64,000 bases of DNA from Penicillus capitatus (lineage: Eukaryota > Plantae > Chlorophyta). The position numbers and the translations under genes were made by a program. Location of the stretch: contig OZ287697.1 in NCBI GenBank assembly GCA_965649825.1, positions 2,094,351-2,158,350 on the forward strand. Reading direction: 5' to 3'. The notes below the pieces were generated by a model that saw only the letters and a program-made list of their open reading frames with translations, ran no database searches and had not been told where the DNA came from. This document shows, one piece after another, positions 2,356 through 24,796 of this stretch. The stretch's first letter is position 1, and every line of letters starts with the position of its first letter.

Positions 2356-2493
2356 TTCGCTTTTTGTTTGGTGTAAACAGAAGCTTAAAAGGGAACGTCA
2401 GATACAAATAACCTAATGCTGTTTCTTTAATTTATATCGATGATGTGACCCTTATTAGTCACCGTCCATGTCGTTCAGCACTCTATCCCGACA
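2355..2493 (-). repeat. 5' LTR of copy 1 (139 bp)
   Basis: Identical to 12537-12675 and 17141-17279. Confidence 0.95.
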
Positions 2494-3140: not shown

Positions 3141-3146
3141 TCCGTA

Positions 3147-4453
3147 CCCCGAAGAGTTACACTTACGATTACCTCACAACCATGGAAGACTACTTCGACA
3201 CGTCGCAGATCAACATCGTGTTCCGAGACTCCGTCGACTACACAGACCCTCAAGACTTTGAAGCGGCCAGGCAGTCGGAGTACGAATACGTTGATGGAGG
3301 ATACCGAACAGAGGAGCGGCTGATGTCGCAGTCGTGGATGGATTTCTACACGCAGTATGTCGAAGCGAAGTTCTGCTCGAACGAGATCTGCATGGACGAA
3401 GTGCACTGGTACTACGATGGCTTCTCCTCTGCCGATTTTGCGCATCCGTCGAAGAACATCTGCGCCGGCGTCGCGTCAGCCGAAGAGTGTGAGCAGAGGT
3501 GCGAGACGCATTGTCCGCAGGAGGCAGTCGGAATGAGAGAACGGTGCCAGTACAAAAAGGACTCGATGGAATGCTACTGCCCTTATCGGCCAATGCTGAC
3601 ACAGCGCAACTTCTACGAGAACCCCGAAGGCTTTGACAGCAAGATCGAGAGCTACTGGGTGGATTTCCTGAACAACACGGCGACCGGACGTGCATCCAGA
3701 GTCTTCATCAACCTGGACGAGGAGACGACGACGGAGAGAAACACCTTCGGCACGCCAAAGGGCACGCGGTCGTACGTCTATGCCAGAGGCCTCACGAGCG
3801 TGCCCAGTCAACTGGACCACCTCCAGGAGGGACGCGACATCCTCGATCGACAGTCGATCGAGGTCTATCCGTTCGACTACGTGGTGTATGCCATCGGCGA
3901 GCAGTACGAAGACCTGGCGTTGAAGACGGTAGAGGCGATAGGCATCTCCATGGCTGTCGCGACGGTCGTCATGCTGCCCCTCATCGTCAACGTCTTTGCC
4001 GCGCTCATCGTGTCTGTCTGCGTGCTGCTCTCTGTTCTGCTGACGGTTGGAATGACCAGTTGGACTGTTATCGATCTGGAATACTCTGCCTACGTTGCTT
4101 TCATTGTGACGGTTGGGTTGTCCGTGGAGTTCTGTGCGCACATTGCTCGAGATTTCATGTTGGCCGAGGGGGATCGTCTCACACGTTCTATACACGCGCT
4201 CCAGACTATGGGCATTGCAGTATTCAATGGCGGCGTTACGACTTTTCTCGGAATTCTGCCCTCTGCTCTTTCAGATTATCCAGCCATTAGAAATCGTTTG
4301 TTCGTTCAGTATTCCATTTCCACTATCGCCGGCATGTTTACGGGCCTGCTCCTCCTGCCGACCATCCTGTCCCTGATTGGACCTCCGTCCTCCTCCCCCG
4401 AGGAACCGAATAAAGATGCCAAGGATCCGCAGAAAGGAGCGGCACAGCCCTGA
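3147..4453 (+). pseudogene. 5'-truncated NPC1/Patched-like copy (C-terminal 423 aa still open, 3182-4453)
   Basis: Near-identical to the C-terminal third of the 1260-aa ORF at 37894-41676; begins abruptly at CCCCGAAGAG. Confidence 0.9.
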
Positions 4454-5031
4454 TGAATGTACAGATATCATTGGGGCGCATCTTGTTATTCTTTGTTGTT
4501 GTGTTCCTTTTGCGAGTCAGTGCGTTCGCTCTGATGTGTTTTGCCATGAGTGTTTTTTTATTGCATGTGGTATGGGAGACATAAACAATGATGAATGATA
4601 AACGATAACGACCGACGTGAGTTACGTTCGTTGATCCATGTGTCGACGTTCGTTAGAACACGCGACATCGTCGTGCCAAGAACAAGCCGCCGTACATATT
4701 CAACATTCAATCTGTCATATCTGAACTCTGCCATTGTAATGACTTTGTGTGTTATGATATTCCTTTAACCGAACAATCATGTCTCATCGTCTCGGCAGAA
4801 ATTCAACAGGTACTGACGATGGAGAATTCACAACACGCAGCCGATACGTAATGTCGAACATAGATGTTGCACTCAATATGTCCGACGGAGCCTGCTGTGC
4901 TTACAGCTGTGCTCACTATCACTCTTTCACTGACAGCTATGCTCACTCTGTCACTCTCTCACTCGCAGCCAGAAACAACACTTCTGTCGCGGAACTGTGG
5001 TCATAGCCGGAGTTAATATGGTGTCACACTT

Positions 5032-6692
5032 TCAGTAACTTCTATTACAAGTTAAAAACTGTACATATGACAATGCACAAGATTTATTGAAAGTCTGAAT
5101 GGAGTCTAGCAATTTCCGGCGGATTTCTTCTGTCACTCCAGGTATGTCTCTAAACGCAAGTCACACACCAGAAGGTGATCAACTTGGACAGATAGACAGA
5201 AAAAGGCTTACGTGGTGATGTCTATGGTTCTCCAGCTATCCGCATCTCCATCTTTCTCCCTTAGTTTGCAGCGTTCCTTGATCTCTGCAAAATCCGGCTC
5301 GGGAGAATTTTTCCTTAGATTTCCAAAGACATGACAGGCTGCCTCTGGAGATGATGACCAAATCAACCTGCAGAACACAAAACAAACTCTGTCATGTTAT
5401 TTAAGAAGCATCATTGTAGATTACCCGTAGGTTGGAAAATGATGCATCAATAAGAAAAGACGGGAAACAATACTTTTAGATGAGATCGGCACAATGAGAT
5501 CATCATCTAACAGGGGCATCCGCCTCCCATTCAACTCGATGTGCAGCATCGGGGTCTTGAATCTCTTCTTCATGGCGGCCATTTGCTTGAAGATTCTCTT
5601 CGAGTTGAATGACCCGTGAAAATCTGTCACCGTTTTCCTCTCGATGACGATGTCCGGGGTCAATACATAGTCCCCCACCTACCGTATTTCTTTTTATGTT
5701 TTTGTGATGTTTATTACTCATTGTCTTACCTTCAGAGTCGATGCTCGGAGCCTAAAGTTTGCATAATCTAGTGCGGCTGGGAGTATGGCTCTAAACTCGC
5801 GGATGTCAATGACAACCTCCCCTCGCCTCACAACGTCCTATCATGGCAGATTCTCTTTTCTAGCACATATTTTGATATGTGAGTGATGCATTACCAAGTG
5901 CAGATCGAATCGTCTTTTGATGTCTAGAGAGAGGAGAATGTACTCCTTGTTGTCCTCTATGTCCTTAAAGACATTCTCCTCTCTCTCTGCTGCATCCGTC
6001 ATCATCATCTCAATGTCGATGTCGGCCACCACCGATGCCCGAGAACGTAGCCAAAGGGAGAGCTGCCGAAGATGCAACAACTCCATGACCCCCTTTGCCT
6101 AAATCTCACACATTTAACAAAATTTTTCACACTGCTAAACAAAACCTTGGTGAATCCTGCTTCATTTGAAGCAGGATTGTTGCTAATCAGATGAACAAAC
6201 CCTTGAGGGTTGCCTCGATGGAAGAGGCGCAAAGAAAATTCGATGCCGGAGTGTCGGAACACCTCTACTGGATCGAAAAATAAGATCCCAGCAAACGCGC
6301 CAGGATTGATCTCGTGCTCCAAGAAGTCGATTAGCAGAATGAGTGTGGTCACGAAACACACACTCCCTTTTTGGTAATGCTCATGTCGCTTCTTCTGCGA
6401 CATTTTGTCCTTGCTGAGATCGACCGGTTTTGATCCCGAGGGATCTTGGCGGCCGATCTCATTGCTCAGAGCTTCTTTCGTTGACTCTGAGCAACCAACG
6501 AGAAGCACAGCCCCTCGTTTCCTTGATGGCATGGGTGCGGAGAAAGGCCTTGACGGGTTTTGTCCACCCGATGCCGGAGCCAACAACGAAAGGATAGCTC
6601 GGAAAAACTGCTCCTGCGGGATTTGCCGCCAATGACACCGCACACAACTCCTTCGCACAACTGAACCGAAACTCACGGAATTCTTCTGCCAT
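5032..6692 (-). pseudogene. XPF-like: Short XPF/ERCC4 (Rad1-like) endonuclease paralog, probably frameshifted
   Basis: N-terminal XPF segment (HYQKGSVCFVTTLILLIDFL...SLRLFHRGNPQGFV), nuclease VIDIREF...GDYVLTPDIVIERKTVTDF, RLIWSSSP and an HhH exon IPGVTEEIRRKLLDSI; frame change near 6530-6560. End coordinate approximate. Confidence 0.8.
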
Positions 6693-6704
6693 GTGTTTTT
6701 ACCT

Positions 6705-8675
6705 TTACGAATGCATAGAGGAGTAGTGTGAGGACGGCGCAGATGAGGAGATCGGGAGATCGTTAAAGATCTGCGCTTATTTTATCGCGTCCAATGACAA
6801 AGGCTCCAGAGATCAGATCCAAGGCGTCTTGTTTTCTGCCGTCCTCAAAGTTGTTGAGGTAGTAACGTGTGACACTCTTGATACCGTCGTCGATCAGTCC
6901 CCCTACGGAACGCTTTCCTGTGCGAGTGAAACCACTCTCTAGCGCTCCCGTTCCACTATATTGAAGGGAGATTTCGTCTCCGTGATCTGCCCAGATCACT
7001 TTGAACTGGGCCTCGACCTGCATAAACACAAAGCTATGGACGACATGACAGCAGATGGCGCTGTATCTGACACGAGGGAAAGATGCTGGCAGAGATGCTT
7101 GGACCCCAAGTAGATGCGCTTTCTCGAGAAAGGACTCCAAGGCATAACGGCCAAACACAGTTTGCACGACGTTGGTGCGATCAAGGCAATCGACACAATT
7201 GGTGCGAACGATGCCGTCTTGAACAGATGTTGCTCGGCCCTCCTCCTGTCATGCACTTGTGTTCGCACACGAAATCGGACGAGGATAGAGATACCATAAC
7301 GAACAGGCCAAAGCGATCCGGATCTGCTCGGATTCTGTCGAAGAGGATGTAGATACGATGATATCGAGTCGTTCCACATTCTTCACTGAAATCAGAATTG
7401 TTGAGACGGAAGCCGTCTTTCGTCCTTGAGAAACGCCGAGCGGAATTTTCGGATGCACTTGTCAAGGAACCCTCAGATCCGGTGGCGCGTGCCAAATTCG
7501 CCGCAACGCATTCCTGTCCAACAACATCTCTGCATCCCATCCCCCACGACACAGGCCTTGTTGCTCACTGTGTGCGTATGGAGAAGGTCATCGACGTGAA
7601 CGTCGAAGGCATGTGTGTAGTCCATCTCTCTCCCGAGACGCGTGGGTGGCTCGTGCTTGAGTTCGGAATGCTCGTCCAAAACGCGGGGATCGATCCTCGC
7701 AGCTGAATGAACGAACACACATGTCCATTCGACAGACACAGAAGCTGTTCTGTCTCGACGGAATCTGCCACGGATCCCTGACATCAACACATACAGGTTC
7801 GTGAGGCGTAGACGCGAAGAAGCACTTGGAGATCGGCGCCCCTTCTCCAGCTGCGCGTGCCCAGGCGTCTCACCGAACGACGTGCCACAATCGTCAACTT
7901 CCCGGTTACTCGGTGCGAGAATTCCGAATCCGTCAGCTCCTGTACGAAGCGTTGAATGACAGGTAACACAAATCCATGTGCTCTCGGCTCTACACCGCCG
8001 ACATCTGGACATCCTCGCGGAAAGGGATGTGCATTACGTGTGACGGGTTCCATCACATGGCGATTCCAGGAGAAGCGGGTGTCTTCCAGTCCCCACGACC
8101 CTCCTCCTCTTTCGTTGCCGACGGCCGCCTGTCGCTCAGTGCTCGGCGTCAGTCGGATTCAGCTGCTGAAGCACAGTCCTCTTCCGGCTTGTTTGGGATC
8201 CACTGCCGATCTCGCCAATTCGATGTGGCTACGCACAGGGGCTCGCACAAATCACGCGTCCACACATCTACGCACGCACTTGGCATCTTCTGGTGGAAAA
8301 CGTCCCCTGGGAAGATGCAGTTCTGTCTGAACCACTCGGTAAACTGGGGAGCCATGCACCGTTGCGACCTGCAGGACAAACAAAGGCTGTCGCCGTCCGG
8401 TCTGCGTGAGCAGGCGAGTGCACTTGTTTCGCTTCCTTGATGGTGACGAGGACCGTTGCTTTGGCAAGGAGAAGCATTCCCAGAAGTCCAGGGAACGCGA
8501 TGCAGCTACGAAGGAAACGCGGCCGCGTCGACGCTTCGGCTGTGCCGGTTCGGAGGTCGATCTCCAGCGTCTCGACGCATTCCCCTGTCGAGCGGAAAGG
8601 CTGAAGGACGACGACGTCGCCCGTTCTCCTGAGGGCGACGCCAACGAAGGCGTTCGTTATTGCGGTCTCAGTCAT
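6705..8675 (-). pseudogene. SAC1: SAC1-type phosphoinositide phosphatase pseudogene, copy 1
   Basis: Motifs LRGSIPAFW, RTNCVDCLDRTN, WADHGDEISLQYSGTGAL, RYYLNNFEDGRKQDA; 1-nt deletion at about 7660 and TAA before the first TM helix. Confidence 0.85.
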
Positions 8676-10070
8676 GGCGCTTCTTCGCGTCTTCGACTCG
8701 ACGCTGCGACACCTGTGGTCTCGCGCGCCGCAGCGTCGAGCTGTGCTGTCGAAGGTGTTGGCGGCGAGACCGGTCGCGCCGAGAGAGATTCCGAGCGCGG
8801 CCTACAGAAAGAAGTGTCTGCTGGGGTGTGGGAAACGGTCGTCGACTGCAAACCTGAAGGCGAAATTGACGAGACGCTGGTTGCAAAGATGGCGTGCATT
8901 TACAATGATGGAAAACTGACGACGCCGACGAATCCTAGACTCTGGACGGGACGGATGTGACATTGCAGAAGACGGTGGACACTGAGAAGCATTGTCTTTG
9001 TGCTCTTTCATCTTGGGAGCGCGCGTCTCGCTAAAAACTGTCCCGCATTCACTAGAGAAGCCGAATTGAGTATGGCGGACGGGAACGCTGACTGGTGATG
9101 TGACCAACGGCCAAATGACGCACGGTGAGAGGTTGTCCACGTAAAGCAATTCGAGGCGCAATGACCTCCGACTTTTCCGTTTTAGTGTTTCGGTGCGGAA
9201 TGTGCTCGAAAGAGACATCATGGCAGTCGTGACGCGTCTGCTGAGGCGAATTCCGACAGTTGTCGCCCGTTCCAGTGACAGCGACAATCACAGACGGGCA
9301 GACGACGAGCGGTTTTCGTTACCTGAGCGATCAACGCAGTCGCTGTCTTCTGACACTCGCTTGCCCTTATGACGCGACGCATCCCTTGATGTTCCGAACA
9401 GGCAAGCGCCTATCAGATCGATGAAAGTAAGCAACATATTTCGTCTCTCATCGAGACTCCGTTGTCTGTTGGGGACATGGAGCCGACGACAGACCAGACA
9501 GGCACCAGGTTTCGCCGCTATCTTCGTAAGATGCTTCTTCTTGCCGACACGTGTTGCTGAGAGCCGTTTCTTGTCGGCGGATGCACCGCCGACCGATCTC
9601 CGTATTGCCAAACACAGTCGGAAATGGCCAATCTCCGAATGCTGTTCTGTGTTGCAGATCAAGGGCATGGTATCGGGCGGTGGACCGGAGAGATTCCTTC
9701 GGAGCAGGCCAGTCATCCGTCTGCATGGCATTGTATGAAGCTCTGCCGCGAAGGATACGGTGAGTCATTCTCGCCTTTTGTTGGGCGAACCCGCAACTTT
9801 CAGGGTGCATGCCGTGTAAGAAGTACTATGGTCGACTGTTGCGTTTTGTCTGACCACTCCTGAGGATTCCCATATCGATAACAAATTTACCTCTCGCTGC
9901 ATAGAGCATCCGTCCAGTGGTTGTTGTTCAAGGTGCGCATTTTTGCTGTTCGGCGCGCTGAATTGTTCTGACGAGTTGTCAAACACTCTCAACGTTGTCG
10001 TCTCATAATCTGAATTTTAGAGAACATGTTGGCTGCAATAGTAGAGTCCGTTTGGCAGGACACCGCCATG
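8672..10070 (-). other. Unassigned, probably degenerate gene upstream of SAC1 (copies at about 22791-24170 and 32925-34342)
   Basis: GT-AG-bounded segments; the third copy encodes a TM-like ALGISLGVYMYWALYVK ending in TGA that overlaps the SAC1 ATG. No family recognised. Confidence 0.3.
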
Positions 10071-12536
10071 GATCTAACCACCTGCATATCGCACAGAGAG
10101 AGGTAATGGATAGACTCTACAGAAGCAGATTTCGCATTCTTGCGTCTTAAAGGGATCGATGTAGCACATTTTAATTTAGCTCTGCATATCGCGCTGCTCT
10201 CTTTCGTCAGTGTCCGCTTGTGTGCGGGAGAGACTATCGTCGGGCGCGAGCATGCGTGGTACCTTTACGCTTCGCGAGCAAAGTTGACTCAACTTTTGAG
10301 CAACGCGTCCGAATAAATGCATCTGTCAAAAAGCGTCAACCACATCGCCTTTTGTAAATGTATGCCGCCCATTATCGGCATGTAGAATATCACAACAACG
10401 TGTTCTGAAAAAAGAGTCCGACTTCGTCGGTCTATAGGAAACCTCTTCTTACGTGGTATTTGCTATAAACTGGTTTTCTAGATTTACAAAAAAGCAGGCC
10501 ATTCATTCATCGTTCTATCATCCAACTAATGTGTTGAATAGAAACGGTAGGCTGCACCTGTTCTGTCGTTTTGATTGTACAGAGGGAGTTGGGAAAAAGA
10601 GGCAAGAAATCAACAGGGCACTTCAACTTTGGACGGCGCCAATGCTAGGCGTTCAAAGCTCTCGTTGTTCGCCCCGGAGTTCACTCGGAGGTAATAACTC
10701 CGGCATCATCTACAAGCAATATGTTGTGACAACGTCTCCGCAATGCACCGCTTTGCGTTGAGAGAAGAGCCAGAATCATTATTCCCACATCCAGCACTTC
10801 AAGGGCACGCTTTGACGCTTTCGCTTTCACAAATAGGCTACTTTGTGCCGCGATAACGCACTCTTCTCTCTCGAAACTCGAACGATCGTCATCATTTACA
10901 CCTCTCGTCTCTGTAACCGAGCAGATTCTTTCCGGGATGACGAATTGCATAGAGAGGATGTTGGCAATGAGCTGACTGTCGCGTGTATGACGTGCGGGAT
11001 CGAGAGGAGCCTGTGGCATCATGCCCGAAACATTGGCCTACTGCCGAGATCTTTTTTACACTTGACCGAAGTTTGGTCGCGGTGCTGTGGAGCATATGAA
11101 TTCCTGCTTTCTGTAAAAGAGATTCTAAATCGGCAGATAGGAACGTTTCATAAGTCAACAAAAATTTGGAATGAAATTGCACTTGTCACAGGAAACCGCA
11201 TATCTTCCAAGAACTTCAGGACTGAGAGTTGAACATTGGAATAACTGCAAAATACTTGCACCATCTGGAGTTCCGGCACAGAGTTAAGCACGGTATCGAT
11301 GTGGACTTGGTCATTCTTGATGAAAACACATGTCAAGAACGGAAACGATAGCTTGGATAATGAAATAATAAAAGGGCTTCTATCACCACGGTTTAGGACA
11401 ACGTGATGTTCACGTCTTGGTCACTCTGGCACGATCTCTGCTATAGATGACAAGGATAATGGAACAGATCAGCAGAGATCCTCCAACTGCAAGCTGGAGG
11501 CTGATCTCTTCTGCAAAGAAAATGACGCCGCCGCACACAATCATCATAACACTTGATGATGAGGCCATGGCAGCCTTGATAGAAGGACCAATCTGAAACG
11601 CACGGACGATGAAGACATGATTCACGCTACCACAGGCCGTCAAGATGTACAGACCGATGTGTTTGAGAGAAGGTGTCCAATCAATCTTCTCTGGATAGCC
11701 GATGGTGAGGAAAGGAACTGCAAAAAGAGCGAGAAGAACTGTCGAGTGATTCGCAATCACGACGGATGGAATGCTTCTGTCGATTTTCCTGCAAAAGACA
11801 AAAGATGCAGTCTGTTTTGGATAATGGTTGCTTTACCCGACAAGGAGGAAGCTTGTGGCTATAAAAAGGACAGATAAGAAAGCACAGACCAGGCCACCGA
11901 TGCGCTCGATGTCCCATACGAGAGAATCTTCATCCTCAACAAGAAACGGTGGACGTGCGATGAGTACATTTGCACCAATCGATCCAACAATGCCAATCCA
12001 GGAGTACAAGTCGATGGATTCAGTTCGGAACATCCACGCCATAAAAGCGAGCATTGCTGTACAAACACGCATTCGTTCGCACACATAAGTACTTGTGAAT
12101 GACCTGGATAGGTCCCGTTCAGAAGAGCGGCCTCCGACAGTGTAATGAGAACAGAGGAGACCAAAGCAAAGAACAATCCCAGTGCAGCAAACATTCCACG
12201 TAGCACGATCCATTTCATATTGCGATCCAACTGACCGATGATGAAGCCTGTTTGGTAGTATCCAAGTGGCACCAAGACTGGCAATGCCAAAGTTCCACGA
12301 GCGAAGATGGCTTGGAAGACAGACGCGTCGTCATTAGAGAGCTCCTTCGTGGCGACGACGTCCGCCGATAAAAACAAAGCGCCCAGTACGGCACAGCCGA
12401 TGCAGCTGTCCCATATCAAACTGCATCACGTCGTCTCTCTAGTGCGTTGCATTCGTCGAAGGACGGAACATACCTGACAGCCCTGGAAATAATAGAGGGT
12501 GGCTCAGGTAGTGACGCCTCCTGTAAAGATGGTAAG

Positions 12537-12675
12537 TTTCGCTTTTTGTTTGGTGTAAACAGAAGCTTAAAAGGGAACGTCAGATACAAATAACCTAATG
12601 CTGTTTCTTTAATTTATATCGATGATGTGACCCTTATTAGTCACCGTCCATGTCGTTCAGCACTCTATCCCGACA
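12537..12675 (-). repeat. 3' LTR (139 bp)
   Basis: Identical to 17141-17279; on the minus strand it begins TGTCG, ends CGAAA and contains GATATAAATT. Confidence 0.95.
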
Positions 12676-15555
12676 CGCTTCCAGCTGCGCTGTAGTCATA
12701 TGAGGGACTTGTCTCAGTTGATCGTCGTGAACCTTATAGACTTTCCCAAAAAGTAAACCCTCTACTAGCCATAGGCTGTTTCCCAGGGCCTCCTTTACCA
12801 CGCATGGCTCTTCATCCCATGGTGGGCGAAATGTGCCCGCATCAGCTTTTATTCTTGGCCTCAGCACATGATCTCCCAATTTAACTCGTTTCCTACTTCC
12901 AAACTTTTTCCTTCTCAGTTCATTCGTGTATTCCTGCCGCTTCAATGTCTTCTCCATTGCTTCTTGAATCCACCTCTTCTGGACTTCATTATTTACCTTT
13001 CTTCCATTCCTCATCTCTCCATTCTTCAACTCCGCGGCACTATATCCAGTGGTCTCATTTACCGAGCGGTTCATAATGCGAGTCGCCGTGGGTAGAACCT
13101 TCCTCCACTCCCAAGGATTCTTTGCCATCCTCTTTAGTCTCCCCTTGAGCACCCCTATCTGTCTCTCACACATCCCATTTGACTGAGGCATGTAACTGGC
13201 CGTCAGTCGCTGCACAGTCTTGTTCCTTTCACACCAACTCCTCACTTCCTTGGATCGCCATGTTTGAGCATTGTCTGACACGAGCATTTTGATCTTGCCA
13301 TTTTTCTGTCTCCACTTTCCTAATGCTCTTACTGCCACTTCGCTGCTTGGGGCAGTACAAGCCCATGCTTCGACCCATCGTGAGAGGTAGTCCACCATCA
13401 CAAGGATATATCTTGGCTCCTCTCTATCCTTAATCGGTAACGGACCAGCAAAGTCAATACCCACAGCGTCTCCAATTCCAGTTGCCGTTGTGATTCCCAA
13501 ATCCACTCTGTGTTGTACCTGTCCCCACATCTGACAAGTCCAACAATTCGCCACATATTCTTGAACATCTCTTTCCATCCCTCTCCACTTCGGGCCCCCA
13601 TCTCTTTTTAAATTTAGTACTGTTTTCTTTACTCCCCAGTGGCCTTCATGCGCCGCTTGCAATCTTTTCCTTTGCCCTTTATACTCTCCGCCTTGTATAA
13701 CATTTAGGTCCACTTCCTTCCGCTGTGCTAAAGTGGGCCAACGGGAAAGACAGTCAGCGAGAAAGTTATCCGAAGACGGCAAGAAATGCAAGAACAGTCG
13801 GGTGTGTAGAGGAAAATTAGACCACAGCCATCCCAGGCGGCGACCCACACGTAGATCAGAACGTGATTTGTACCAAACATCCCGAGCCTGGAGTTTTTGT
13901 AACGCGCTGAGTGAGTCTGTATATAAATGAACAGGGCAGCCGACAGTAAGGGGAAGAGTGTCTTGCAGACACCAAATAATAGCGTCAAGCTCACCAAGAA
14001 AAGAGCTGACAGGATAGCCATGAAGACTACGCGAGTTAGTAGCAATGATGCGGCGTTGTGAACGATGACCCGCATAGAGAAGATAGCCAGCTCCGGCTCC
14101 CGACCAATCAACTTCAAGATGAAAACTTGGGGATGCGACACAACGGAGGAAATTCAGCGAATTGCGAATTAACCGGGCAGCTACAGCACGGATGAGATTT
14201 TGAACTTCTGACCAATCAATGAAGTGGACTTGTTTATGAAGAAGGGAGTAAAGAGGTGCAAGAGCAATTCCCAAGCCAGGGCAATTGCCGCGACAAGCAG
14301 TAAAAATTCCCAATACACGCTGTAATTCCTTACGAGATCGAACCAGCGGCAACTGTGCAAGTTGTTGTGAGATAAAATTGCGCTGATGATATTGATCACC
14401 CGAGAGAGAAAATCCAAGAAACTGAACCGATGGGCGGCAGAATTGGACCTTGCGCGGATTCACATGCAGACCGGCGGATTGGAGAGCGGTCAGAACAGCT
14501 TCTAAATTGCGATCATGTGAAACGCGATCCTGGCCACCAACAATAATGTCATCGAAATAAGCTAATCCAGGTAAATGGCCAAGAATTCGGCGGATACGGT
14601 CGTTGAAGAAACCGACACTTGAGGCCCAGCCCTGAGGAAGAGTGACAAAACGGAAACGACGGCCAAAACAGGAAAAACAAAACAGGCGACTGAGGGCAGT
14701 GTCCACTGGAATATGAAAATACCCATCGCGAAGATCAAGGATGGTAAAGAAACGCCACGAAGGCTCAACAGCGCGAATAGCTGTTCGTGTGTCTAGAGTG
14801 TGCGAATTCCAGACTTCGGAATAGTGGTTCAATTTTTGAAAATTAACCACCACGCGTACACGGCCGTCAGGTTTACGAAGAAAAATGACAGGAGAGAAAA
14901 ACCCACGGTCAAAACGAGGAACTTCTTGTATAATGCCACGGGAAAGTAAGGATTCAATCTCGTGCCGCGCATGCTGGGCAGAACAATCAGTAAAGCAAGG
15001 AGGAGCACCCGAGTCTGCAAACGGGACCGGGGACTTCCAGATCAAATCGTCAGCTCTTACTACAAGCGCACGGAGTGTAGAAGACGTCGCATAACTAGAA
15101 TCATTGTCGGCAAAAAAGTACGGAAAACGAGATTGCCAAACAGAAAACGAAGGTGACGATTCCAAACCAACATCCGGGCGCTCGGATGTGGGGGAATCCT
15201 GAGAAGTAAGTCGTAAAACGAGTTGTGGGTCATTAAGAATCCGCCCACTTCCGGAAAAGGTTCCTCGAACGACTTTCAACTTAGGGGAAAGTGTAGTGAG
15301 GCGGTCGGAGAAATTGTGAATACGGACAGAAACACGACCGTTCTTTCCGAGAATAGGATTGACCGAAACGTCTCGCAGAAAACAACACGAAAACAGGCCA
15401 GTAAGGCCTCCACCAAGCACACTAACCGGAAGGACTGATAAGCGACTTTCAAAAGGTGTCAGGAAAAGAGTTCGGCCGAGTTTGAGAATAAAAGATGTTT
15501 GAGAGATACTTGGTTCAGCACCCTTAAGAAGGGCACGGTCTACTCGAAGCGTCAC
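12637..15555 (-). CDS. pol: Pol polyprotein: dUTPase-like region, RT, RNase H, integrase
   Basis: RT motifs LDLRDGYFHI, LPQGW, YFDD; RNase H VDWSG/ELDA/YTDS/ADCLSR; integrase HEGH-CWTC, IDFAG, SDNA, NGMCER. The frame is open upstream past 15594. Confidence 0.96.
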   Translation of the reverse strand: MTLRVDRALLKGAEPSISQTSFILKLGRTLFLTPFESRLSVLPVSVLGGGLTGLFSCCFLRDVSVNPILGKNGRVSVRIHNFSDRLTTLSPKLKVVRGTFSGSGRILNDPQLVLRLTSQDSPTSERPDVGLESSPSFSVWQSRFPYFFADNDSSYATSSTLRALVVRADDLIWKSPVPFADSGAPPCFTDCSAQHARHEIESLLSRGIIQEVPRFDRGFFSPVIFLRKPDGRVRVVVNFQKLNHYSEVWNSHTLDTRTAIRAVEPSWRFFTILDLRDGYFHIPVDTALSRLFCFSCFGRRFRFVTLPQGWASSVGFFNDRIRRILGHLPGLAYFDDIIVGGQDRVSHDRNLEAVLTALQSAGLHVNPRKVQFCRPSVQFLGFSLSGDQYHQRNFISQQLAQLPLVRSRKELQRVLGIFTACRGNCPGLGIALAPLYSLLHKQVHFIDWSEVQNLIRAVAARLIRNSLNFLRCVASPSFHLEVDWSGAGAGYLLYAGHRSQRRIIATNSRSLHGYPVSSFLGELDAIIWCLQDTLPLTVGCPVHLYTDSLSALQKLQARDVWYKSRSDLRVGRRLGWLWSNFPLHTRLFLHFLPSSDNFLADCLSRWPTLAQRKEVDLNVIQGGEYKGQRKRLQAAHEGHWGVKKTVLNLKRDGGPKWRGMERDVQEYVANCWTCQMWGQVQHRVDLGITTATGIGDAVGIDFAGPLPIKDREEPRYILVMVDYLSRWVEAWACTAPSSEVAVRALGKWRQKNGKIKMLVSDNAQTWRSKEVRSWCERNKTVQRLTASYMPQSNGMCERQIGVLKGRLKRMAKNPWEWRKVLPTATRIMNRSVNETTGYSAAELKNGEMRNGRKVNNEVQKRWIQEAMEKTLKRQEYTNELRRKKFGSRKRVKLGDHVLRPRIKADAGTFRPPWDEEPCVVKEALGNSLWLVEGLLFGKVYKVHDDQLRQVPHMTTAQLEACRDRVLNDMDGD

Positions 15556-15594
15556 GCCAGGCGAAGCGCCATGACCTGGCGGAGCTAGTTTGAA
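15555..15594 (-). promoter_or_regulatory. Candidate -1 ribosomal frameshift signal (U UCA AAC, 6-nt spacer, 7-bp stem)
   Basis: Heptamer 15588-15594 directly before the gag-pro TAG; stem CGCCAGG (15575-15581) / CCTGGCG (15555-15561); pol is in the -1 frame and open across the site. Confidence 0.6.
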
Positions 15595-17141
15595 GAGACC
15601 GAGTGACAGAATACCACATGACCGTCTGTCCCAAGGAGGCAGTCATTGGAGCAGTCCACCGAGATACCAAAAGTTTTCAAAGCCGAATACCCGAGGATCA
15701 CCTTATTAGTCGCATCGGTCACATAGTAGGGAATTGCTTGATTCCAGCCGCCAATGCGCGTCGGCAGAATGACCTCGCCGGTGACTTGACTGGTTGAATT
15801 ATTGAACCCACGTAGTTGAGTGTTTTCCACTCGCTTTACTCGAAGACCCCAGCGCTGGCAATACTGAAGCGGCAATAACGATACCTCTGCCCCAGTGTCA
15901 ATGAGAGCTTGTTCCTTCTCCGGCCGGTTGGCTAGGTAAGTTGCCACTTTCAATGAAGCCCGACCCCTTTGAGGTCTGCTAGACGACGACTGGTCAACTC
16001 GAGGATAATCGATATATTTGACTGTGTCCTTTCCCGAGTCTTCCTCCTTCAAAACCATCAGTCTTGTCTCTTTGGGCTTGCCCTTCTTCGCAGAGATGTC
16101 GCGTTGTGTTGCCGGGGATAGGCCAACGGAGAGTACAGATGCTGAGTCGTCCTCCCTCTCTTCCTCTTCAAACGCAGCCAACGGTGCGAAGTGATTCTGT
16201 GTTGGTATTGGGTGCGATTCCCGCACGTGGTGTGATCGTTGGCGACAGAATTTGGCTGAGTGGCCATACTCTCCACATTGATAGCAGTTTCCCTGAAACT
16301 GCCTTGCTGGCCGTCTTTGACCAGAACGTTTATTTCCTCTTAGATTCTGGAACTGGCCTTGCGATCCCTTCTGGCGCCACTGTCCGACAATGTCCTCAGC
16401 AATGCTTGCAAAACGAGGATTTCTGGCAAGTTCACTCCTCATTGCATCACAGAGCTCTCGTAATGATAATGTCTGGCCAAAACTGTCCACGTTATGGGAA
16501 ATGTTCCCTCCTCCATTTGCATCTATCGCATCCACTTCCATGGCATCCTTATCCACCTCGGCGGCAGACGATGACCCCGTCCAAAAAGTCACGTTTCTAA
16601 TGACCAGAATCATCTCATTTATCGTAGCCGTAACGGGCAGACTAGCGATTGCCCTCTTTAGTGCTGGCGGGAGTTTTCCATATAACAGCTTTATTTGCAT
16701 TTCCCTCGCTAGACCAGACTGAGTTGCCATGACTCCGAACCTCTCCGCGAACTGTAGCCAAGATTCCGCCTTTTTCTTGCTCGCAGATGCCAGCCTCTCT
16801 CCTGAAGTGGCTCCTGCAGTGGAGCATTGGGCCAGAAGCATTGCTTTAAAAACGTGCCACTTGTCCTCATCGCTTATCGCCGCCTTTGCTGCAGGGAAAC
16901 AATTCTTGATGGCCGCGGCCCTTGTCGCGAATGCAGTGTTAAACGCGGCGAGTTCTGCAAAATGTGGCTCAGCGGTCCCCGTCACCTGGCGGAAGAGCTC
17001 GAACAAGGGCGAGCCGACTTCGACCCTTTCCATGACTTTGGCCATCCGCGGTCGATAACCGTCAGCGACCATAGCGGCCGCGTTGAGAGCGGTCTCAACC
17101 TCATGACGTTCAGTGGATAGATATTGTCGCTCCGAAACCAT
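15585..17141 (-). CDS. gag: Gag-protease polyprotein, copy 2
   Basis: 518 aa, CCHC knuckle and DTGA protease; the A of the first ATG is the last base of the 5' LTR. Confidence 0.93.
   Translation of the reverse strand: MVSERQYLSTERHEVETALNAAAMVADGYRPRMAKVMERVEVGSPLFELFRQVTGTAEPHFAELAAFNTAFATRAAAIKNCFPAAKAAISDEDKWHVFKAMLLAQCSTAGATSGERLASASKKKAESWLQFAERFGVMATQSGLAREMQIKLLYGKLPPALKRAIASLPVTATINEMILVIRNVTFWTGSSSAAEVDKDAMEVDAIDANGGGNISHNVDSFGQTLSLRELCDAMRSELARNPRFASIAEDIVGQWRQKGSQGQFQNLRGNKRSGQRRPARQFQGNCYQCGEYGHSAKFCRQRSHHVRESHPIPTQNHFAPLAAFEEEEREDDSASVLSVGLSPATQRDISAKKGKPKETRLMVLKEEDSGKDTVKYIDYPRVDQSSSSRPQRGRASLKVATYLANRPEKEQALIDTGAEVSLLPLQYCQRWGLRVKRVENTQLRGFNNSTSQVTGEVILPTRIGGWNQAIPYYVTDATNKVILGYSALKTFGISVDCSNDCLLGTDGHVVFCHSVSSN
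17129..17140 (-). promoter_or_regulatory. Primer-binding site candidate TGGTTTCGGAGC
   Basis: Immediately follows the 5' LTR, starts TGG, and matches the plant initiator-Met PBS consensus TGGTATCAGAGC at 10/12. Confidence 0.6.
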
Positions 17142-17279
17142 TTCGCTTTTTGTTTGGTGTAAACAGAAGCTTAAAAGGGAACGTCAGATACAAATAACCT
17201 AATGCTGTTTCTTTAATTTATATCGATGATGTGACCCTTATTAGTCACCGTCCATGTCGTTCAGCACTCTATCCCGACA
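17141..17279 (-). repeat. 5' LTR (139 bp)
   Basis: Identical to 12537-12675; followed by TSD GTAAG. Confidence 0.95.
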
Positions 17280-17932
17280 GTAAGCGAACATCAATTCTAT
17301 CATCGCGTTCATGCAGCTCGGAGTCGGTTGGGTCAGGTGCCCGTGGAGGTCGGGGTATGTCAATTCTTTGCTCCGGAATAGGCGAAGAAGGTTGTGCTGC
17401 TAGCTTCATTCTGAGATTTACACGACGGCGACACTTTGCAGTGGCCGCTTGGCCGATAGCTATACTTATAGTTCATATTTAGGTCACATGGCCGATGGCT
17501 GTAGTTGTAGTTCATATTTAGGATAACGTGCCGCACGAAGTTGACGAAAATAGGAGCAGACAAGTGCTGCTGACGCAGCATCCTGCCGGGAAAAACTACT
17601 ACGCGTGCATCAATCACCTCTGCCGTTTTGAACCTGAAATGGCGGGGCGTTTCCGCAGGGGCACTGACAGACAACGCCATCTTCAAAGACAAATCATCTT
17701 TTTGAAGAACACAAAATCTGGCGGTACTTCTTTCACCATCCATTGCTTTGGCAAAGTACTTGCTAGATGAGAAGAGCGGACATGGATGTTATATCGACGG
17801 CTTCATTTTAGGTTCTAGGCCGGATGGACACTGAATCGACACCTACGCTCTTGATGTGCTTGTTGAACTGATCCCTACAAGGAACGTCGGTACATCCAAA
17901 ACGTGCTTCACGACAGGGACTTCGAATCCGTA

Positions 17933-19239
17933 CCCCGAAGAGTTACACTTACGATTACCTCACAACCATGGAAGACTACTTCGACACGTCGCAGATCAAC
18001 ATCGTGTTCCGAGACTCCGTCGACTACACAGACCCTCAAGACTTTGAAGCGGCCAGGCAGTCGGAGTACGAATACGTTGATGGAGGATACCGAACAGAGG
18101 AGCGGCTGATGTCGCAGTCGTGGATGGATTTCTACACGCAGTATGTCGAAGCGAAGTTCTGCTCGAACGAGATCTGCATGGACGAAGTGCACTGGTACTA
18201 CGATGGCTTCTCCTCTGCCGATTTTGCGCATCCGTCGAAGAACATCTGCGCCGGCGTCGCGTCAGCCGAAGAGTGTGAGCAGAGGTGCGAGACGCATTGT
18301 CCGCAGGCGGCAGTCGGAATGAGAGAACGGTGCCAGTACAAAAAGGACTCGGTGGAATGCTACTGCCCTTATCGACCAATGCTGACACAGCGCAACTTCT
18401 ACGAGAACCCCGAAGGCTTTGACAGCAAGATCGAGAGCTACTGGGTGGATTTCCTGAACAACACGGCGACCGGACGTGCATCCAGAGTCTTCATCAACCT
18501 GGACGAGGAGACGACGACGGAGAGAAACACCTTCGGCACGCCAAAGGGCACGCGGTCGTACGTCTATGCCAGAGGCCTCACGAGCGTGCCCAGTCAACTG
18601 GACCACCTCCAGGAGGGACGCGACATCCTCGATCGACAGTCGATCGAGGTCTATCCGTTCGACTACGTGGTGTATGCCATCGGCGAGCAGTACGAAGACC
18701 TGGCGTTGAAGACGGTAGAGGCGATAGGCATCTCCATGGCTGTCGCGACGGTCGTCATGCTGCCCCTCATCGTCAACGTCTTTGCCGCGCTCATCGTGTC
18801 TGTCTGCGTGCTGCTCTCTGTTTTGCTGACGGTTGGAATGACCAGTTGGACTGTTATCGATCTGGAATACTCTGCCTACGTTGCTTTCATTGTGACGGTT
18901 GGGTTGTCCGTGGAGTTCTGTGCGCACATTGCTCGAGATTTCATGTTGGCCGAGGGGGATCGTCTCACACGTTCTATACACGCGCTCCAGACTATGGGCA
19001 TTGCAGTATTCAATGGCGGCGTTACGACTTTTCTCGGAATTCTGCCCTCTGCTCTTTCAGATTATCCAGCCATTAGAAATCGTTTGTTCGTTCAGTATTC
19101 CATTTCCACTATCGCCGGCATGTTTACGGGCCTGCTCCTCCTGCCGACCATCCTGTCCCTGATTGGACCACCGTCCTTCTCCCTCGAGAAACCGAATAAA
19201 GATGCCAAGGATCCGCAGAAAGGAGCGGCACAGCCCTGA
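17933..19239 (+). pseudogene. 5'-truncated NPC1/Patched-like copy 2 (open ORF 17968-19239)
   Basis: Matches the intact gene's C-terminal 423 aa except TEERLM vs TEGRLM. Confidence 0.9.
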
Positions 19240-19829
19240 TGAATTCTCAGATATCTTTGGGGGATGCATCTCATTACTCTTTGTTGTTGTGTTCTTTTTA
19301 CGAGTCAGTGTGTTCGCTCTGATGTGTTTTACCATGAGTGTTTTTATTGCATGCTGTATGAGACACTAAACAATGATGAATGATGAAGGATAACACGACC
19401 GACGTGAGTTACGTTCGTTGATCCATGTGTCGACGTTCGTTAGAACACGCGACATCGTCGTGCCAAGAACAAGCCGCCGTACATATTCAACATTCAATCT
19501 GTCATATCTGAACTCTGCCATTGTAATGACTTTGTGTGTTATGATATTCCTTTAACCGAACAATCATGTCTCATCGTCTCGGCAGAAATTCAACAGATAC
19601 TGTCGATGGAGAATTCACAACACGCAGCAGATATGCAATGTCGAACATAGATGTTGCACTCAATATGTCCGACGGAACCTGCCATGCTTACAGCTGTGCT
19701 CACTCTCACTCTTCCACTGACAGCTGTGCTCACTCTGTCACTCTCACTCGCAGCCAGAAACAACACTTCTGTCGCGGAACTGTGGTCACAGCCGGAGTTA
19801 ATATGGTGTCACACTTTCAGTAACTTCTA

Positions 19830-20700
19830 TTACAAGTTAAAAAACTGTACAGATGACAATTCAGAAGATGTATTAAAAGTCTGAATGGAGTCTAGCAATT
19901 TCCGGCGGATTTCTTCTGTCACTCCAGGTATGTCTCTAAACGCAAGTCACACACCAAGGTGATCAACTTGGACAGTATGCGAACATGACGTTGCTTGGCT
20001 CGTTCGTCCGTGCTCCATGACACTCACTGTCTCGGGTCACACAAATTGCAGAGTTCTGTGACAATCTGAAACGTAAGCAAACAATAAGATAGACAGAAAA
20101 AGGCTTACGTGGTGATGTCTATGGTTCTCCAGCTATCCTCATCTCCATCTTTCTCCCTTACTTTACAGCGTTCCTGGATTTCTGCCAAATCCGGCTCGGG
20201 AGAATTTTTCTTTAAATCTCTAAAGACATGGCAGGTTGCCTCGGGAGATGATGACCAAATCAACCTGCAGAACACAAAACAAACTCTGTAATGTTATTCA
20301 AGAAGCATCATCGTAGATTACCCGAAGGTTGGAAAATGATGCATCAATACGAAAAGACGGGAAACGATATCCTTAGATGATATCGGCAAAGTGAGATCAT
20401 CATCCAATAGGGGAATCTGCCTCCCGTCTAATTCGATCAACAGCATTGGCGTCTTGAAATGCTCCTCCATGGCGGCCATTTGGTTGAATATACGGTCCGT
20501 GTCGAATGACCTGTGGAAATCTTTCACCGTCTTCCTTTCGACGGCGATGTCTGGGGTCAATATATAATCCCCCACCTACCATATATCTATTTGTGTGCCT
20601 GTGCTGCTGATTATTCATAGTCTTACTTTGAGAGTTGCTGATCGGAGCCTAAAGTTTGCACTGGTCGCCTTTCCGAACTCTCTCATGTATCCCTCTGAGC
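19830..20700 (-). pseudogene. XPF-like: XPF-like nuclease/HhH fragment, copy 2
   Basis: GDYILTPDIAVERKTVKDF; lacks the N-terminal part; clearly diverged from copy 1. Boundaries approximate. Confidence 0.75.
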
Positions 20701-21095
20701 AGTTTCCTTCGAGAACTCGTGCCGGCGTTCTTTTCCATTCTCTGTAACTCTGTCGATGAAGCAGTTTTGCACTCCTCGATTCTGTCAAGAAGGCGCTGCG
20801 GGCAGTTGCCGGACGTTCTGCGGGATCATTTCTGCTGTTCCCATTATCTCTCAGTGTTCCTGAGAGCTTTACCAACGTCGCGCGTCCTCCAACGTTTTCC
20901 ACTACTTTGTCGCTTTTTCGGAGTGGAGAATTAGCGTGCCCGTCGATCGGTGGATTTCGACAGCTTTCAACTTCCGTCAATGCATCCGCCGGAGGGCTCA
21001 TCCCAGTTCTTCTCCACCCACCCACCTCCGTCTCACCTGCCTGAAAGGACCTCGTCCAGGCTTCCCACCCACAACACCTCCAGTTGGTTGATTGA

Positions 21096-22794
21096 TCTCC
21101 GTGATCTGCCCAGATCACTTTGAACCGGGCCTCGACCTGCACAAACACAAAGCTACGGACGACATGACAGCAGATGGCGCTGTATCTGACACGAGGGAAA
21201 GATGCTGGCAGAGATGCTTGGACCCCAAGTAGATGCGCTTTCTCGAGAAAGGACTCCAAGGCATAACGGCCAAACACAGTTTGCACGACGTTGGTGCGAT
21301 CAAGGCAATCGACACAATTGGTGCGAACGATGCCGTCTTGAACAGATGTTGCTCGGCCCTCCTCCTGTCATGCACTTGTGTTCGCACACGAAATCGGACG
21401 AGGATAGAGATACCATAACGAACAGGCCAAAGCGATCCGGATCTGCTCGGATTCTGTCGAAGAGGATGTAGATACGATGATATCGAGTCGTTCCACATTC
21501 TTCACTGAAATCAGAATTGTTGAGACGGAAGCCGTCTTTCGTCCTTGAGAAACGCCGAGCGGAATTTTCGGATGCACTTGTCAAGGAACCCTCAGATCCG
21601 GTGGCGCGTGCCAAATTCGCCGCAACGCATTCCTGTCCAACAACATCTCTGCATCCCATCCCCCACGACACAGGCCTTGTTGCTCACTGTGTGCGTATGG
21701 AGAAGGTCATCGACGTGACCGTCGAAGGCATGTGTGTAGTCCATCTCTCTCCCGAGACGCGTGGGTGGCTCGTGCTTGAGTTCGGAATGCTCGTCCAAAA
21801 CGCGGGGATCGATCCTCGCAGCTGAATGAACGAACACACATGTCCATTCGACAGACACAGAAGCTGTTCTGTCTCGACGGAATCTGCCACGGATCCCTGA
21901 CATCAACACATACAGGTTCGTGAGGCGTAGACGCGAAGAAGCACTTGGAGATCGGCGCCCCTTCTCCAGCTGCGCGTGCCCAGGCGTCTCACCGAACGAC
22001 GTGCCACAATCGTCAACTTCCCGGTTACTCGGTGCGAGAATTCCGAATCCGTCAGCTCCTGTACGAAGCGTTGAATGACAGGTAACACAAATCCATGTGC
22101 TCTCGGCTCTACACCGCCGACATCTGGACATCCTCGCGGAAAGGGATGTGCATTACGTGTGACGGGTTCCATCACATGGCGATTCCAGGAGAAGCGGGTG
22201 TCTTCCAGTCCCCACGACCCTCCTCCTCTTTCGTTGCCGACGGCCGCCTGTCGCTCAGTGCTCGGCGTCAGTCGGATTCAGCTGCTGAAGCACAGTCCTC
22301 TTCCGGCTTGTTTGGGATCCACTGCCGATCTCGCCAATTCGATGTGGCTACGCACAGGGGCTCGCACAAATCACGCGTCCACACATCTACGCACGCACTT
22401 GGCATCTTCTGGTGGAAAACGTCCCCTGGGAAGATGCAGTTCTGTCTGAACCACTCGGTAAACTGGGGAGCCATGCACCGTTGCGACCTGCAGGACAAAC
22501 AAAGGCTGTCGCCGTCCGGTCTGCGTGAGCAGGCGAGTGCACTTGTTTCGCTTCCTTGATGGTGACGAGGACCGTTGCTTTGGCAAGGCGCAGCATTCCC
22601 AGAAGTCCAGGGAACGCGATGCAGCTACGAAGGAAACGCGGCCGCGTCGACGCTTCGGCTGTGCCGGTTCGGAGGTCGATCTCCAGCGTCTCGACGCATT
22701 CCCCTGTCGAGCGGAAAGGCTGAAGGACGACGACGTCGCCCGTTCTCCTGAGGGCGACGCCAACGAAGGCGTTCGTTATTGCGGTCTCAGTCAT
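21096..22794 (-). pseudogene. SAC1: SAC1 pseudogene copy 2, 3'-truncated after WADHGD
   Basis: Same frameshift as copy 1 (about 21780); homology to copy 1 stops at 21096. Confidence 0.85.
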
Positions 22795-24167
22795 GGCGCT
22801 TCTTCGCGTCTTCGACTCGACGCTGCGACACCTGTGGTCTCGCGCGCCGCAGCGTCGAGCTGTGCTGTCGAAGGTGTTGGCGGCGAGACCGGTCGCGCCG
22901 AGAGAGATTCCGAGCGCGGCCTACAGAAAGAAGTGTCTGCTGGGGTGTGGGAAACGGTCGTCGACTGCAAACCTGAAGGCGAAATTGACGAGACGCTGGT
23001 TGCAAAGATGGCGTGCATTTACAATGATGGAAAACTGACGACGCCGACGAATCCTAGACTCTGGACGGGACGGATGTGACATTGCAGAAGACGGTGGACA
23101 CTGAGAAGCATTGTCTTTGTGCTCTTTCATCTTGGGAGCGCGCGTCTCGCTAAAAACTGTCCCGCATTCACTAGAGAAGCCGAATTGAGTATGGCGGACG
23201 GGAACGCTGACTGGTGATGTGACCAACGGCCAAATGACGCACGGTGAGAGGTTGTCCACGTAAAGCAATTCGAGGCGCAATGACCTCCGACTTTTCCGTT
23301 TTAGTGTTTCGGTGCGGAATGTGCTCGAAAGAGACATCATGGCAGTCGTGACGCGTCTGCTGAGGCGAATTCCGACAGTTGTCGCCCGTTCCAGTGACAG
23401 CGACAATCACAGACGGGCAGACGACGAGCGGTTTTCGTTACCTGAGCGATCAACGCAGTCGCTGTCTTCTGACACTCGCTTGCCCTTATGACGCGACGCA
23501 TCCCTTGATGTTCCGAACAGGCAAGCGCCTATCAGATCGATGAAAGTAAGCAACATATTTCGTCTCTCATCGAGACTCCGTTGTCTGTTGGGGACATGGA
23601 GCCGACGACAGACCAGACAGGCACCAGGTTTCGCCGCTATCTTCGTAAGATGCTTCTTCTTGCCGACACGTGTTGCTGAGAGCCGTTTCTTGTCGGCGGA
23701 TGCACCGCCGACCGATCTCCGTATTGCCAAACACAGTCGGAAATGGCCAATCTCCGAATGCTGTTCTGTGTTGCAGATCAAGGGCATGGTATCGGGCGGT
23801 GGACCGGAGAGATTCCTTCGGAGCAGGCCAGTCATCCGTCTGCATGGCATTGTATGAAGCTCTGCCGCGAAGGATACGGTGAGTCATTCTCGCCTTTTGC
23901 TGGGCGAACCCGCGACTTTCAGGATGCATTCCGTGTAAGAAGTACTATGGTCGACTGTTGCGTTTTGTCTGACCACTCTTGAGGATTCCCAGATTGGTAA
24001 CAAATTTACCTCTCGCTGCATAAAGCATCCGTCCAGTGGTTGTTGTTCAAGGTGCGCATTTTTGCTGTTCGGCGCGCTGAATTGTTCTGATGAGTTGTCA
24101 AACACTCTCGACGTTGTCGTCTCATGAGCTGAATTCAAGAGAACATGTTGGCTGCAATAGTAGACTC

Positions 24168-24796
24168 CGTTTGGCATCTACTACACGATCTCGTTCGAAC
24201 AGGGGCTCGATTTGAGTGAGTCTGTGTCGCCGAAGAGTTACACTTACGATTACCTCACAACCATGGAAGACTACTTCGACACGTCGCAGATCAACATCGT
24301 GTTCCGAGACTCCGTCGACTACACAGACCCTCAAGACTTTGAAGCGGCCAGGCAGTCGGAGTACGAATACGTTGATGGAGGATTCAGAACAGAGGAGCGG
24401 CTGATGTCGCAGTCGTGGATGGATTTCTACACGCAGTATGTCGAAGCGAAGTTCTGCTCGAACGAGATCTGCATGGACGAAGTGCACTGGTACTACGATG
24501 GCTTCTCCTCTGCCGATTTTGCGCATCCGTCGAAGAACATCTGCGCCGGCGTCGCGTCAGCCGAAGAGTGTGAGCAGAGGTGCGAGACGCATTGTCCGCA
24601 GGCGGCCATGACAGCCAAAAAAAAACTTCCTGAGCATGACGGTGGTCTACCAGAAGACATAGTTATGTTATTGTACTTGAAGCTCGATCGCTCGAATGCT
24701 TCGCATGAAAAGGCAACTGTCCTCGAAGACAAGCGCCAGTCGACGTCGCTTTCTCGACGGGGCGAGAGAGGAAGCAAGGACAATAACAACGTCTAG
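24168..24796 (+). pseudogene. Chimeric ORF: Patched lumenal-loop fragment fused to an F-box-like N-terminus
   Basis: ORF 24212-24796 reads Patched ...CETHCPQAA then MTAKKKLPEHDGGLPEDIVMLLYLKLD. Confidence 0.65.

Follow-up and report, generated by a model that had tools for sequence, protein, structure and literature searches.

A compact green-algal LTR retrotransposon of Ty3/gypsy type with probable reverse-transcription signals in or beside its coding sequence

An element whose reading frames reach both repeats

We analysed a 64,000-nucleotide stretch of contig OZ287697.1 from the green alga Penicillus capitatus (assembly GCA_965649825.1, positions 2,094,351 to 2,158,350), hereafter the window. 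On its minus strand, positions 12537-17279 hold a long terminal repeat (LTR) retrotransposon of 4,743 bp. Its two LTRs, the 3' copy at 12537-12675 and the 5' copy at 17141-17279, are 139 nt each and 100% identical, and the target-site duplication (TSD) GTAAG stands on both sides (12532-12536 and 17280-17284, plus strand). Direct LTRs and a short TSD are the features that define order LTR. The boundaries have support apart from the repeats, since the flanks, once joined, match an empty paralogue at 48085-50247 through the junction with 83% identity (target site at 49600-49640, plus strand), where GTAAG occurs as a single copy. The size, the identical LTRs and the TSD-defined ends TGTCG...CGAAA given in a preliminary description of this DNA were thus confirmed.

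The internal region of 4,465 bp is filled by two open reading frames (ORFs), which leaves no space for env, and no third, env-like ORF was found in it. ORF1 (15585-17141, minus strand) encodes a gag-protease (PR) protein of 518 amino acids, in which a CCHC knuckle (a weak Pfam match) precedes a retroviral-type aspartic protease (DTG) at the C-terminus. ORF2 (12637-15642, minus strand) encodes pol in the -1 frame with respect to gag, its open frame beginning at 15642. Its Pfam matches are RVT_1 (residues 264-383), RT_RNaseH (477-551), Integrase_H2C2 (629-676) and rve (700-790), corresponding to reverse transcriptase (RT), RNase H (RH) and an integrase (IN) with an H2C2 finger and a DDE core. 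No chromodomain or other domain was detected after the integrase, the last 204 residues giving no Chromo match even at E ≤ 1.

Both ORFs run into the LTRs, as the preliminary description had claimed. The gag ATG consists of base 17141, the last base of the 5' LTR, and the TG of the adjoining primer-binding site (PBS). At the other end, pol terminates at 12637, so that the first 39 nt of the 3' LTR are its last 12 codons (CRDRVLNDMDGD) and stop. The 5' LTR also carries the motif GTCACATCAT followed by TATAAAT (17216-17235, minus strand), which an LTR alignment shows to be conserved across families, recurs in the 3' LTR at 12612-12631 and has a putative promoter role in U3. We consider it very probable that the window element is an intact, autonomous green-algal Ty3/gypsy-type LTR retrotransposon that transposed recently and whose cis-acting signals lie inside or touch both ORFs.

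Relatives were compared at the DNA level at twelve loci (L001-L011 and L132), with related copies drawn from three metagenome assemblies. Nine full elements from six families, 62-99.8% related, have LTRs of 139-181 nt, identical within the pair in 8/9 (L002 has 3 mismatches), and TSDs of 5 bp that are exact bar one mismatch in L008. All nine share the same layout: the final LTR base and TG form the gag ATG, the PBS TGGTTTCGGAGC follows without a spacer, and the pol frame crosses an invariant ACAGCGCAGCTGGAAGCG, reads the LTR from codon phase 0 (its TGT giving Cys) to a stop 33-45 nt into the repeat. The 10-14 pol residues encoded by the LTR vary between families, which counts against a role for this part of the overlap, and it may be functionless. 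Because these residues are unconserved, the LTR-encoded tail of pol is probably a by-product.

A more distant relative, L132 (positions 1759-6623 of its locus), has 32% identity, shares its assembly with L002, L006 and L008, and carries its signals in a conventional, non-overlapping layout. Its LTRs are 157 nt with TG...CA ends, and its pol stops 63 nt ahead of the 3' LTR, leaving a non-coding stretch. L132 measures 4,865 bp versus 4,743 bp in the window element, so the size gained by streamlining is small (~120 bp). The idea of a streamlined lineage, proposed in the preliminary description, therefore stands with respect to the overlapping layout of nine elements but not as a large saving.

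Two relatives have structures of their own. L132 apparently uses three frames (gag, a 137-amino-acid ORF and pol). Each of the two junctions has a run of A, suggesting that it shifts by -1 twice, like certain retroviruses. L007 (1-9650), a 62% relative on an 11.3-kb scaffold, has an LTR-internal-LTR-internal arrangement that repeats every 5,654 nt and would reflect either a tandem array or the assembly of circular or multimeric molecules. The gag of L007 has 848 amino acids versus 441-531 in the other families.

Candidate signals for priming and frameshifting

The PBS of the window element, TGGTTTCGGAGC (17129-17140, minus strand), abuts the LTR and also encodes (M)VSE of gag. These 12 nt are identical in L001-L006, in L008-L010 and in L132, where a 2-nt spacer separates the LTR from an exact TGGTTTCGGAGC within a 130-nt non-coding leader. 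L007 retains CGGTTTCGGAGCG behind its LTR, and its gag begins 27 nt further on. The PBS implies a primer RNA ending in GCUCCGAAACCA, likely a host tRNA, and TGG stands at the start of the PBS in 10/11 elements, as a CCA end predicts.

Several observations weigh against a tRNA primer of this kind. The PBS of L007 starts with CGG, and the implied acceptor stem, with U1:A72 and U2:A71, is unusual. ARAGORN found no tRNA gene in the window and twelve related loci (~170 kb). A metagenome scan for a T-arm joined to the predicted acceptor 3' strand matched at least 120 loci, the matches listed being chance hits with no tRNA among them. However, position 64 was set to C in the scan pattern, perhaps wrongly judging by L002 and L132, and this constraint, together with the restriction to the matches listed, makes the negative a weak one; the tRNA searches were also small. 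These points would suit reverse transcription primed by the element itself, as in Tf1/sushi, or by an internal tRNA fragment instead of the CCA end of a tRNA. We regard that alternative as improbable. Unlike Tf1, the window element lacks self-priming complementarity: the LTRs match the PBS complement over at most 3-6 nt, the level expected by chance from shuffled sequences, and share no motif complementary to the PBS, on which grounds Tf1/sushi-type self-priming was rejected. An Rfam search of the element returned no match.

The sequence upstream of the 3' LTR reads ACAGCGCAGCTGGAAGCG (12676-12693, minus strand) and then TGTCG. The longest purine run there is 5 nt (GGAAG), so the preliminary description was right that a polypurine tract (PPT) is missing from this position. 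What it had not recognized is a conserved non-purine substitute: ACAGCGCAGCTGGAAGCG directly abuts the 3' LTR, encodes TAQLEA of pol, is identical in nine elements of six families and has two changes in L007. The same block precedes the LTR in independent insertions of the window family, so it is not a defect of one copy. Blocks of a GAAGCG type also occur in the distant relatives. In L132 the 3' LTR is preceded by GGCAGCCGAAGCGTA, which is non-coding there, and the 3' part of L011 (34% identity) reads GCGCAGGGAAGCGA followed by TGTGAA. No second, internal (central) copy of the block was found in the element.

Nucleotide conservation was quantified in an alignment of seven divergent elements. 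Invariant columns made up 17% of the gag piece and 41% of the pol piece, and the longest invariant runs fell at the PPT/LTR junction (TGGAAGCG then TGT) and at the gag/pol junction. Third codon positions were invariant throughout the PPT and frameshift blocks. From this pattern we conclude that the block GCGCAG.TGGAAGCG probably is the plus-strand primer region, a PPT by function rather than by composition. Plus-strand priming would accordingly be unusual in sequence rather than absent, given that a conserved substitute exists.

Could the overlaps be incidental, with conservation near the LTRs reflecting nothing but protein constraint on MVSE and TAQLEA? The variable pol tail within the LTR and the saving of only ~120 bp relative to L132 would fit such an explanation, but we consider it very unlikely. 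The 12-nt PBS is present in the non-coding leader of L132 and, with one change, in L007; a GAAGCG block stands ahead of the LTR in L132, again non-coding; and the invariant third codon positions exceed what either the gag or the pol piece displays overall. Since the PBS and PPT-like blocks are kept in distant relatives where they are non-coding, they appear to be true cis-acting signals, conserved beyond codon constraint. The proposal that the LTR, PBS and PPT signals double as coding sequence is thus supported for the PBS and the PPT block but may not extend to the unconserved pol tail.

At the gag/pol junction, a putative -1 frameshift site UCAAACUAG (15585-15593, minus strand) ends in the gag stop codon and is invariant among relatives. 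A hairpin with the stem CGCCAGG / CCTGGCG (15554-15581, minus strand), likewise invariant, begins a few nucleotides past it. In every element pol is in the -1 frame, with a gag/pol overlap of 19-58 nt, and the combination of UCAAACUAG, hairpin stem and -1 offset is identical in ten elements spanning 62-100% identity. At the homologous spot L011 and L132 have an in-frame A_AAA_AAC heptamer, followed a few nucleotides on by a stop and by a hairpin of 8-9 bp. This textbook arrangement makes -1 ribosomal frameshifting the likely mechanism by which pol is made. Of this heptamer the window family retains a reduced form, (U/G)_UCA_AAC, beside the stop codon, and the shift would occur if tRNA-Asn slipped from AAC to AAA.

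The details of the site itself fit this mechanism less well. UCAAAC is not a canonical X_XXY_YYZ heptamer, a covariation test gave no support for the hairpin because all stem bases are invariant, and the hairpin folds no better than shuffled sequence (z = -0.32, not significant). A non-canonical slippery site and a hairpin without statistical support would be expected if the copies were frameshift mutants or if pol were translated separately. We judge this scarcely likely, as the same offset, site and hairpin recur in all ten elements, and in distant relatives the homologous position has the textbook set of heptamer, stop codon and hairpin.

The AA terminus, signs of recent activity and a proposed life cycle

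The sense LTR of the window copy has TG at its 5' tip and AA, in place of the canonical CA, at its 3' tip. Four independent full insertions that are 98-99.8% identical (the window copy, L001, L008 and L009) constitute what we call the AA family. The last three are at separate loci, have identical LTR pairs all ending in ...GCGAAA, and are bounded by 5-bp TSDs (ACATG in L001, GTCCT/GGCCT in L008 and TGGCT in L009). The 5' LTR of a fifth copy, L010, ends in the same way, which brings the AA tip to 5/5 copies of the family. In contrast, the sister elements L002-L006 (five elements in four families, with TSDs GAATG, GCCCT, GATAC, GTGGA and CGTGG) end in ...AACA or ...GACA.

That the AA tip is a private mutation or an error in a family that normally ends in CA is virtually refuted: although L002-L006 do end in ...ACA, AA is found in both LTRs of four copies and in the 5' LTR of L010, at different loci, with different TSDs and in two different assemblies.

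Given AA in independent insertions and CA in the sisters, the change from C to A at the U5 end is best read as a derived trait that became fixed in a single family and allows repeated integration. The alteration is confined to the U5 tip, the other 3'-OH strand keeping ...ACA. The sister families, with 62-74% pol identity, have the overlapping layout of the window family yet retain the canonical ...ACA end, and their proximity allows the change to be assigned to one branch. The comparison indicates that the non-CA end is limited to this single family and that the overlapping layout is the older of the two traits. An integrase tolerant of a non-CA end, as suggested in the preliminary description, is supported by the repeated AA insertions, with the qualification that the sisters sharing the layout end in TG...CA.

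Some observations concern individual LTRs and insertion sites. The fifth AA-family copy (L010, 4480-4800) has a truncated pol of 919 amino acids and lies within another short repeat with units containing GGTACCCCCTTTGG, so that it is rearranged or nested in appearance. L005 (1963-2339 and 7097-7163) is inserted in an array of a 63-nt minisatellite, and the repeat resumes beyond both ends of the element. TGTAA is the usual polyadenylation signal of chlorophytes. In L003-L006 (four sister families) it occupies an aligned position ~30-40 nt short of the end of the LTR; in the window family TGTAT lies further upstream.

Copies within one assembly differ by 0.2-0.4%, and two subfamilies are ~1.5% apart. 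Between the subfamilies, pol has 25-26 synonymous versus 9-16 non-synonymous codon changes. The ORFs are all intact. Identical LTRs, intact ORFs, near-identical copies and the synonymous excess together are indirect evidence for recent and probably continuing transposition, in line with the preliminary description.

A life cycle can be proposed from these features. Transcription would start past the TATA box in the 139-nt 5' LTR, giving a leader of ~50 nt, and Gag-PR would be translated from an AUG made up of the last U5 base and the first two bases of the PBS. A minority of ribosomes would shift by -1 at UCAAAC just ahead of the gag UAG, aided by the hairpin, to yield Gag-PR-RT-RH-IN. The minus strand would be primed on the 12-nt PBS starting with TGG, likely by a host tRNA whose CCA end reads ...GCUCCGAAACCA, and the plus strand from the conserved block GCGCAGCTGGAAGCG directly 5' of U3, in place of a classical PPT. 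Because the PBS and the PPT substitute both adjoin the LTRs, the cDNA should be blunt, with ...ACA-3' at the U3 side and ...AAA-3' at the U5 side. Integrase would then join both cDNA ends and produce the 5-bp duplications. In this scheme the transcription start, the frameshifting, the identity of the primer, the blunt cDNA ends and present activity are what we infer from sequence.

Classification, precedents and genomic surroundings

The order PR-RT-RNase H-integrase is that of Ty3/gypsy elements (Metaviridae). The closest solved structures are the foamy-virus PR-RT, the Ty3 Gag-Pol, the murine leukaemia virus (gammaretroviral) RT and the prototype foamy virus integrase. The top named matches of pol are gypsy-type, with a copia match only at E = 3e-4, and the ORFs have no Pfam match to the Bel-Pao domains Peptidase_A17 and DUF1758/1759. 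On the basis of Pfam domains and nearest structures, the element appears to be Ty3/gypsy-type (Metaviridae-like) with a gag-PR / RT-RH-IN split. Assignments to chromodomain, Bel-Pao or copia elements were rejected on Pfam content and domain order.

Close relatives of pol are rare. A search of 5.8 billion proteins recovered only seven (one tier at 98%, then 62-74%), the next matches being at ~27%. A further ~25 full-length pols with 26-34% identity, Caulerpa lentillifera proteins among them, came from 1.84 billion cluster representatives, which were searched exhaustively and without profiles. In a tree of RT-RH-IN, one cluster comprises the window family and its sisters as well as L011, L132 and the proteins from Caulerpa, and metazoan gypsy-type and chromodomain-bearing pols lie outside it; this is a rough neighbour-joining (NJ) tree without bootstrap values or labelled references from REXdb or GyDB. 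Among green-algal Ty3/gypsy elements, chromoviruses of the Chlamyvir and Tcn1 clades of REXdb are known (PMC6317226). The window element differs from these in lacking a detected chromodomain and in standing apart in the rough NJ tree. The REXdb survey, which defined the clades Athila/Tat/Ogre, Phygy and Selgy, found none of these in algae and reported no algal Ty3/gypsy elements without a chromodomain (PMC6317226). We found no chlorophyte lineage already described that matches the element, although this was a thin test, a full-text search for the PBS string that returned only unrelated PCR primers.

These results raise the tentative possibility of an undescribed, green-alga-specific Ty3/gypsy clade without a chromodomain, sharing the PBS, a non-purine plus-strand motif and the -1 split. 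If true, this would be a clade of a type reported absent from algae by the main classification of plant LTR elements. It would be marked by an unusual PBS (a U1:A72 tRNA or a non-tRNA primer), a GCAG..GAAGCG motif and the gag-PR / RT-RH-IN split in the -1 frame. One sub-lineage would have lost all non-coding spacers, and the single change from CA to AA at U5 would be datable between living sister families, which would offer a matched pair for studying how integrase reads the LTR tip. The family itself is new, as is the series of relatives showing the origin of the compact form and of the AA tip; the green-algal clade containing it is probably new as well.

Comparison with known systems places these traits in context. 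The window element and Ty3 have in common the PR-RT-RH-IN order, the H2C2 finger and DDE core, an RNase H of RT_RNaseH type and a 5-bp TSD, and are also alike in their separate gag and pol frames and TG 5' end. Identity to named gypsy pols is nevertheless only ~25% at best. The window element differs from Ty3 in having PR in the gag frame, a -1 shift (that of Ty3 is +1), no purine-rich PPT, a PBS that abuts the LTR and contains the start codon, and an AA end at U5.

In Ty1, a compact element of Saccharomyces cerevisiae, the GAG AUG is inside the 5' LTR and the PPT, which is not pure purine, lies in the POL coding sequence. Ty1 is the clearest precedent for cis-acting signals that double as coding sequence. 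It differs in belonging to another superfamily (Ty1/copia), in having integrase before RT, a +1 shift, a tRNA-iMet primer and LTRs of 334 bp with TG...CA ends. Reverse-transcription signals of Ty1 are located in the GAG region, and the element has a 53-nt 5' untranslated region and a short PBS of 10 nt (PMC3592414).

A precedent for an unusual terminus is Tos17 of rice, an active element of 4.3 kb with 138-bp LTRs and TG...GA ends. A survey of 50 plant genomes catalogued seven non-TGCA types, whose LTRs are short and which favour genic sites (bioRxiv 10.1101/137141). Tos17 and the other non-TGCA elements imply that TG...CA is typical but not obligatory; TG...AA is not among the types named in the survey text. 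Tos17 and 89% of the non-TGCA cases catalogued there are Copia elements, whereas the window element is Ty3/gypsy-type. Each single oddity of the window element thus appears to have a precedent in either Ty1 or Tos17.

The element adds a well-defined and apparently active Ty3/gypsy family to green algae, for which curated knowledge of transposable elements is thin. Its value is mainly comparative. Close families with identical PBS and PPT-like blocks are set apart by a CA or an AA tip of U5, and distant relatives hold the same signals in non-coding positions. This natural series could serve to study end recognition by integrase, plus-strand primers that are not polypurine and the embedding of cis-acting signals in coding sequence. 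Annotation tools that require TG...CA ends, a PPT and ORFs set apart from the LTRs would overlook the window family or place its boundaries wrongly.

The window also holds a second copy of the insertion. Positions 1-2493 (minus strand, with the 5' LTR at 2355-2493 and gag at 799-2355) are 100% identical to 14787-17279 and are cut by the window edge. The adjoining flank at 2494-4014 is 99.8% identical to 17280-18800, and 1-10057 as a whole parallels 14787-24176. Because the flanks are 99.8% identical too, this is one insertion carried along in a tandem segmental duplication of ~14.8 kb rather than a second transposition, and an independent insertion at the same site was rejected. More generally, the window is a patchwork of large segmental duplications that are 97-99% identical. 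Inverted duplications (17924-22895 versus 39210-34238, and 32405-34202 versus 24692-22896) extend into the region of an NPC1-like gene.

The empty paralogue at 48085-50247 is an older copy of the element's flanks, with 83-90% identity and no insert. Both sets of flanks carry parts of an ORF for an EamA-like membrane protein (for example at 11859-12419 and 49182-49511, minus strand), which places the element in or beside one member of a small gene family. At 17443-17520, ~165 nt from the 5' end of the element, a 39-nt unit occurs twice in tandem with 82% identity.

Host genes in the window are consistent with the chlorophyte origin that the preliminary description had guessed. The queuine tRNA-ribosyltransferase at 30138-31529 is closest, among named proteins, to those of chlorophytes, with 63-66% identity to the proteins of Pleodorina, Volvox, Bryopsis, Chlamydomonas and Micractinium, and has closer relatives among metagenomic proteins only. 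This gene and those for an NPC1/Patched-like protein (37894-41676), an acetyl-CoA transporter (46065-47633) and a SPRY protein (61874-63559) are each a single uninterrupted ORF, which points to an intron-poor green-algal genome with ~52% G+C.

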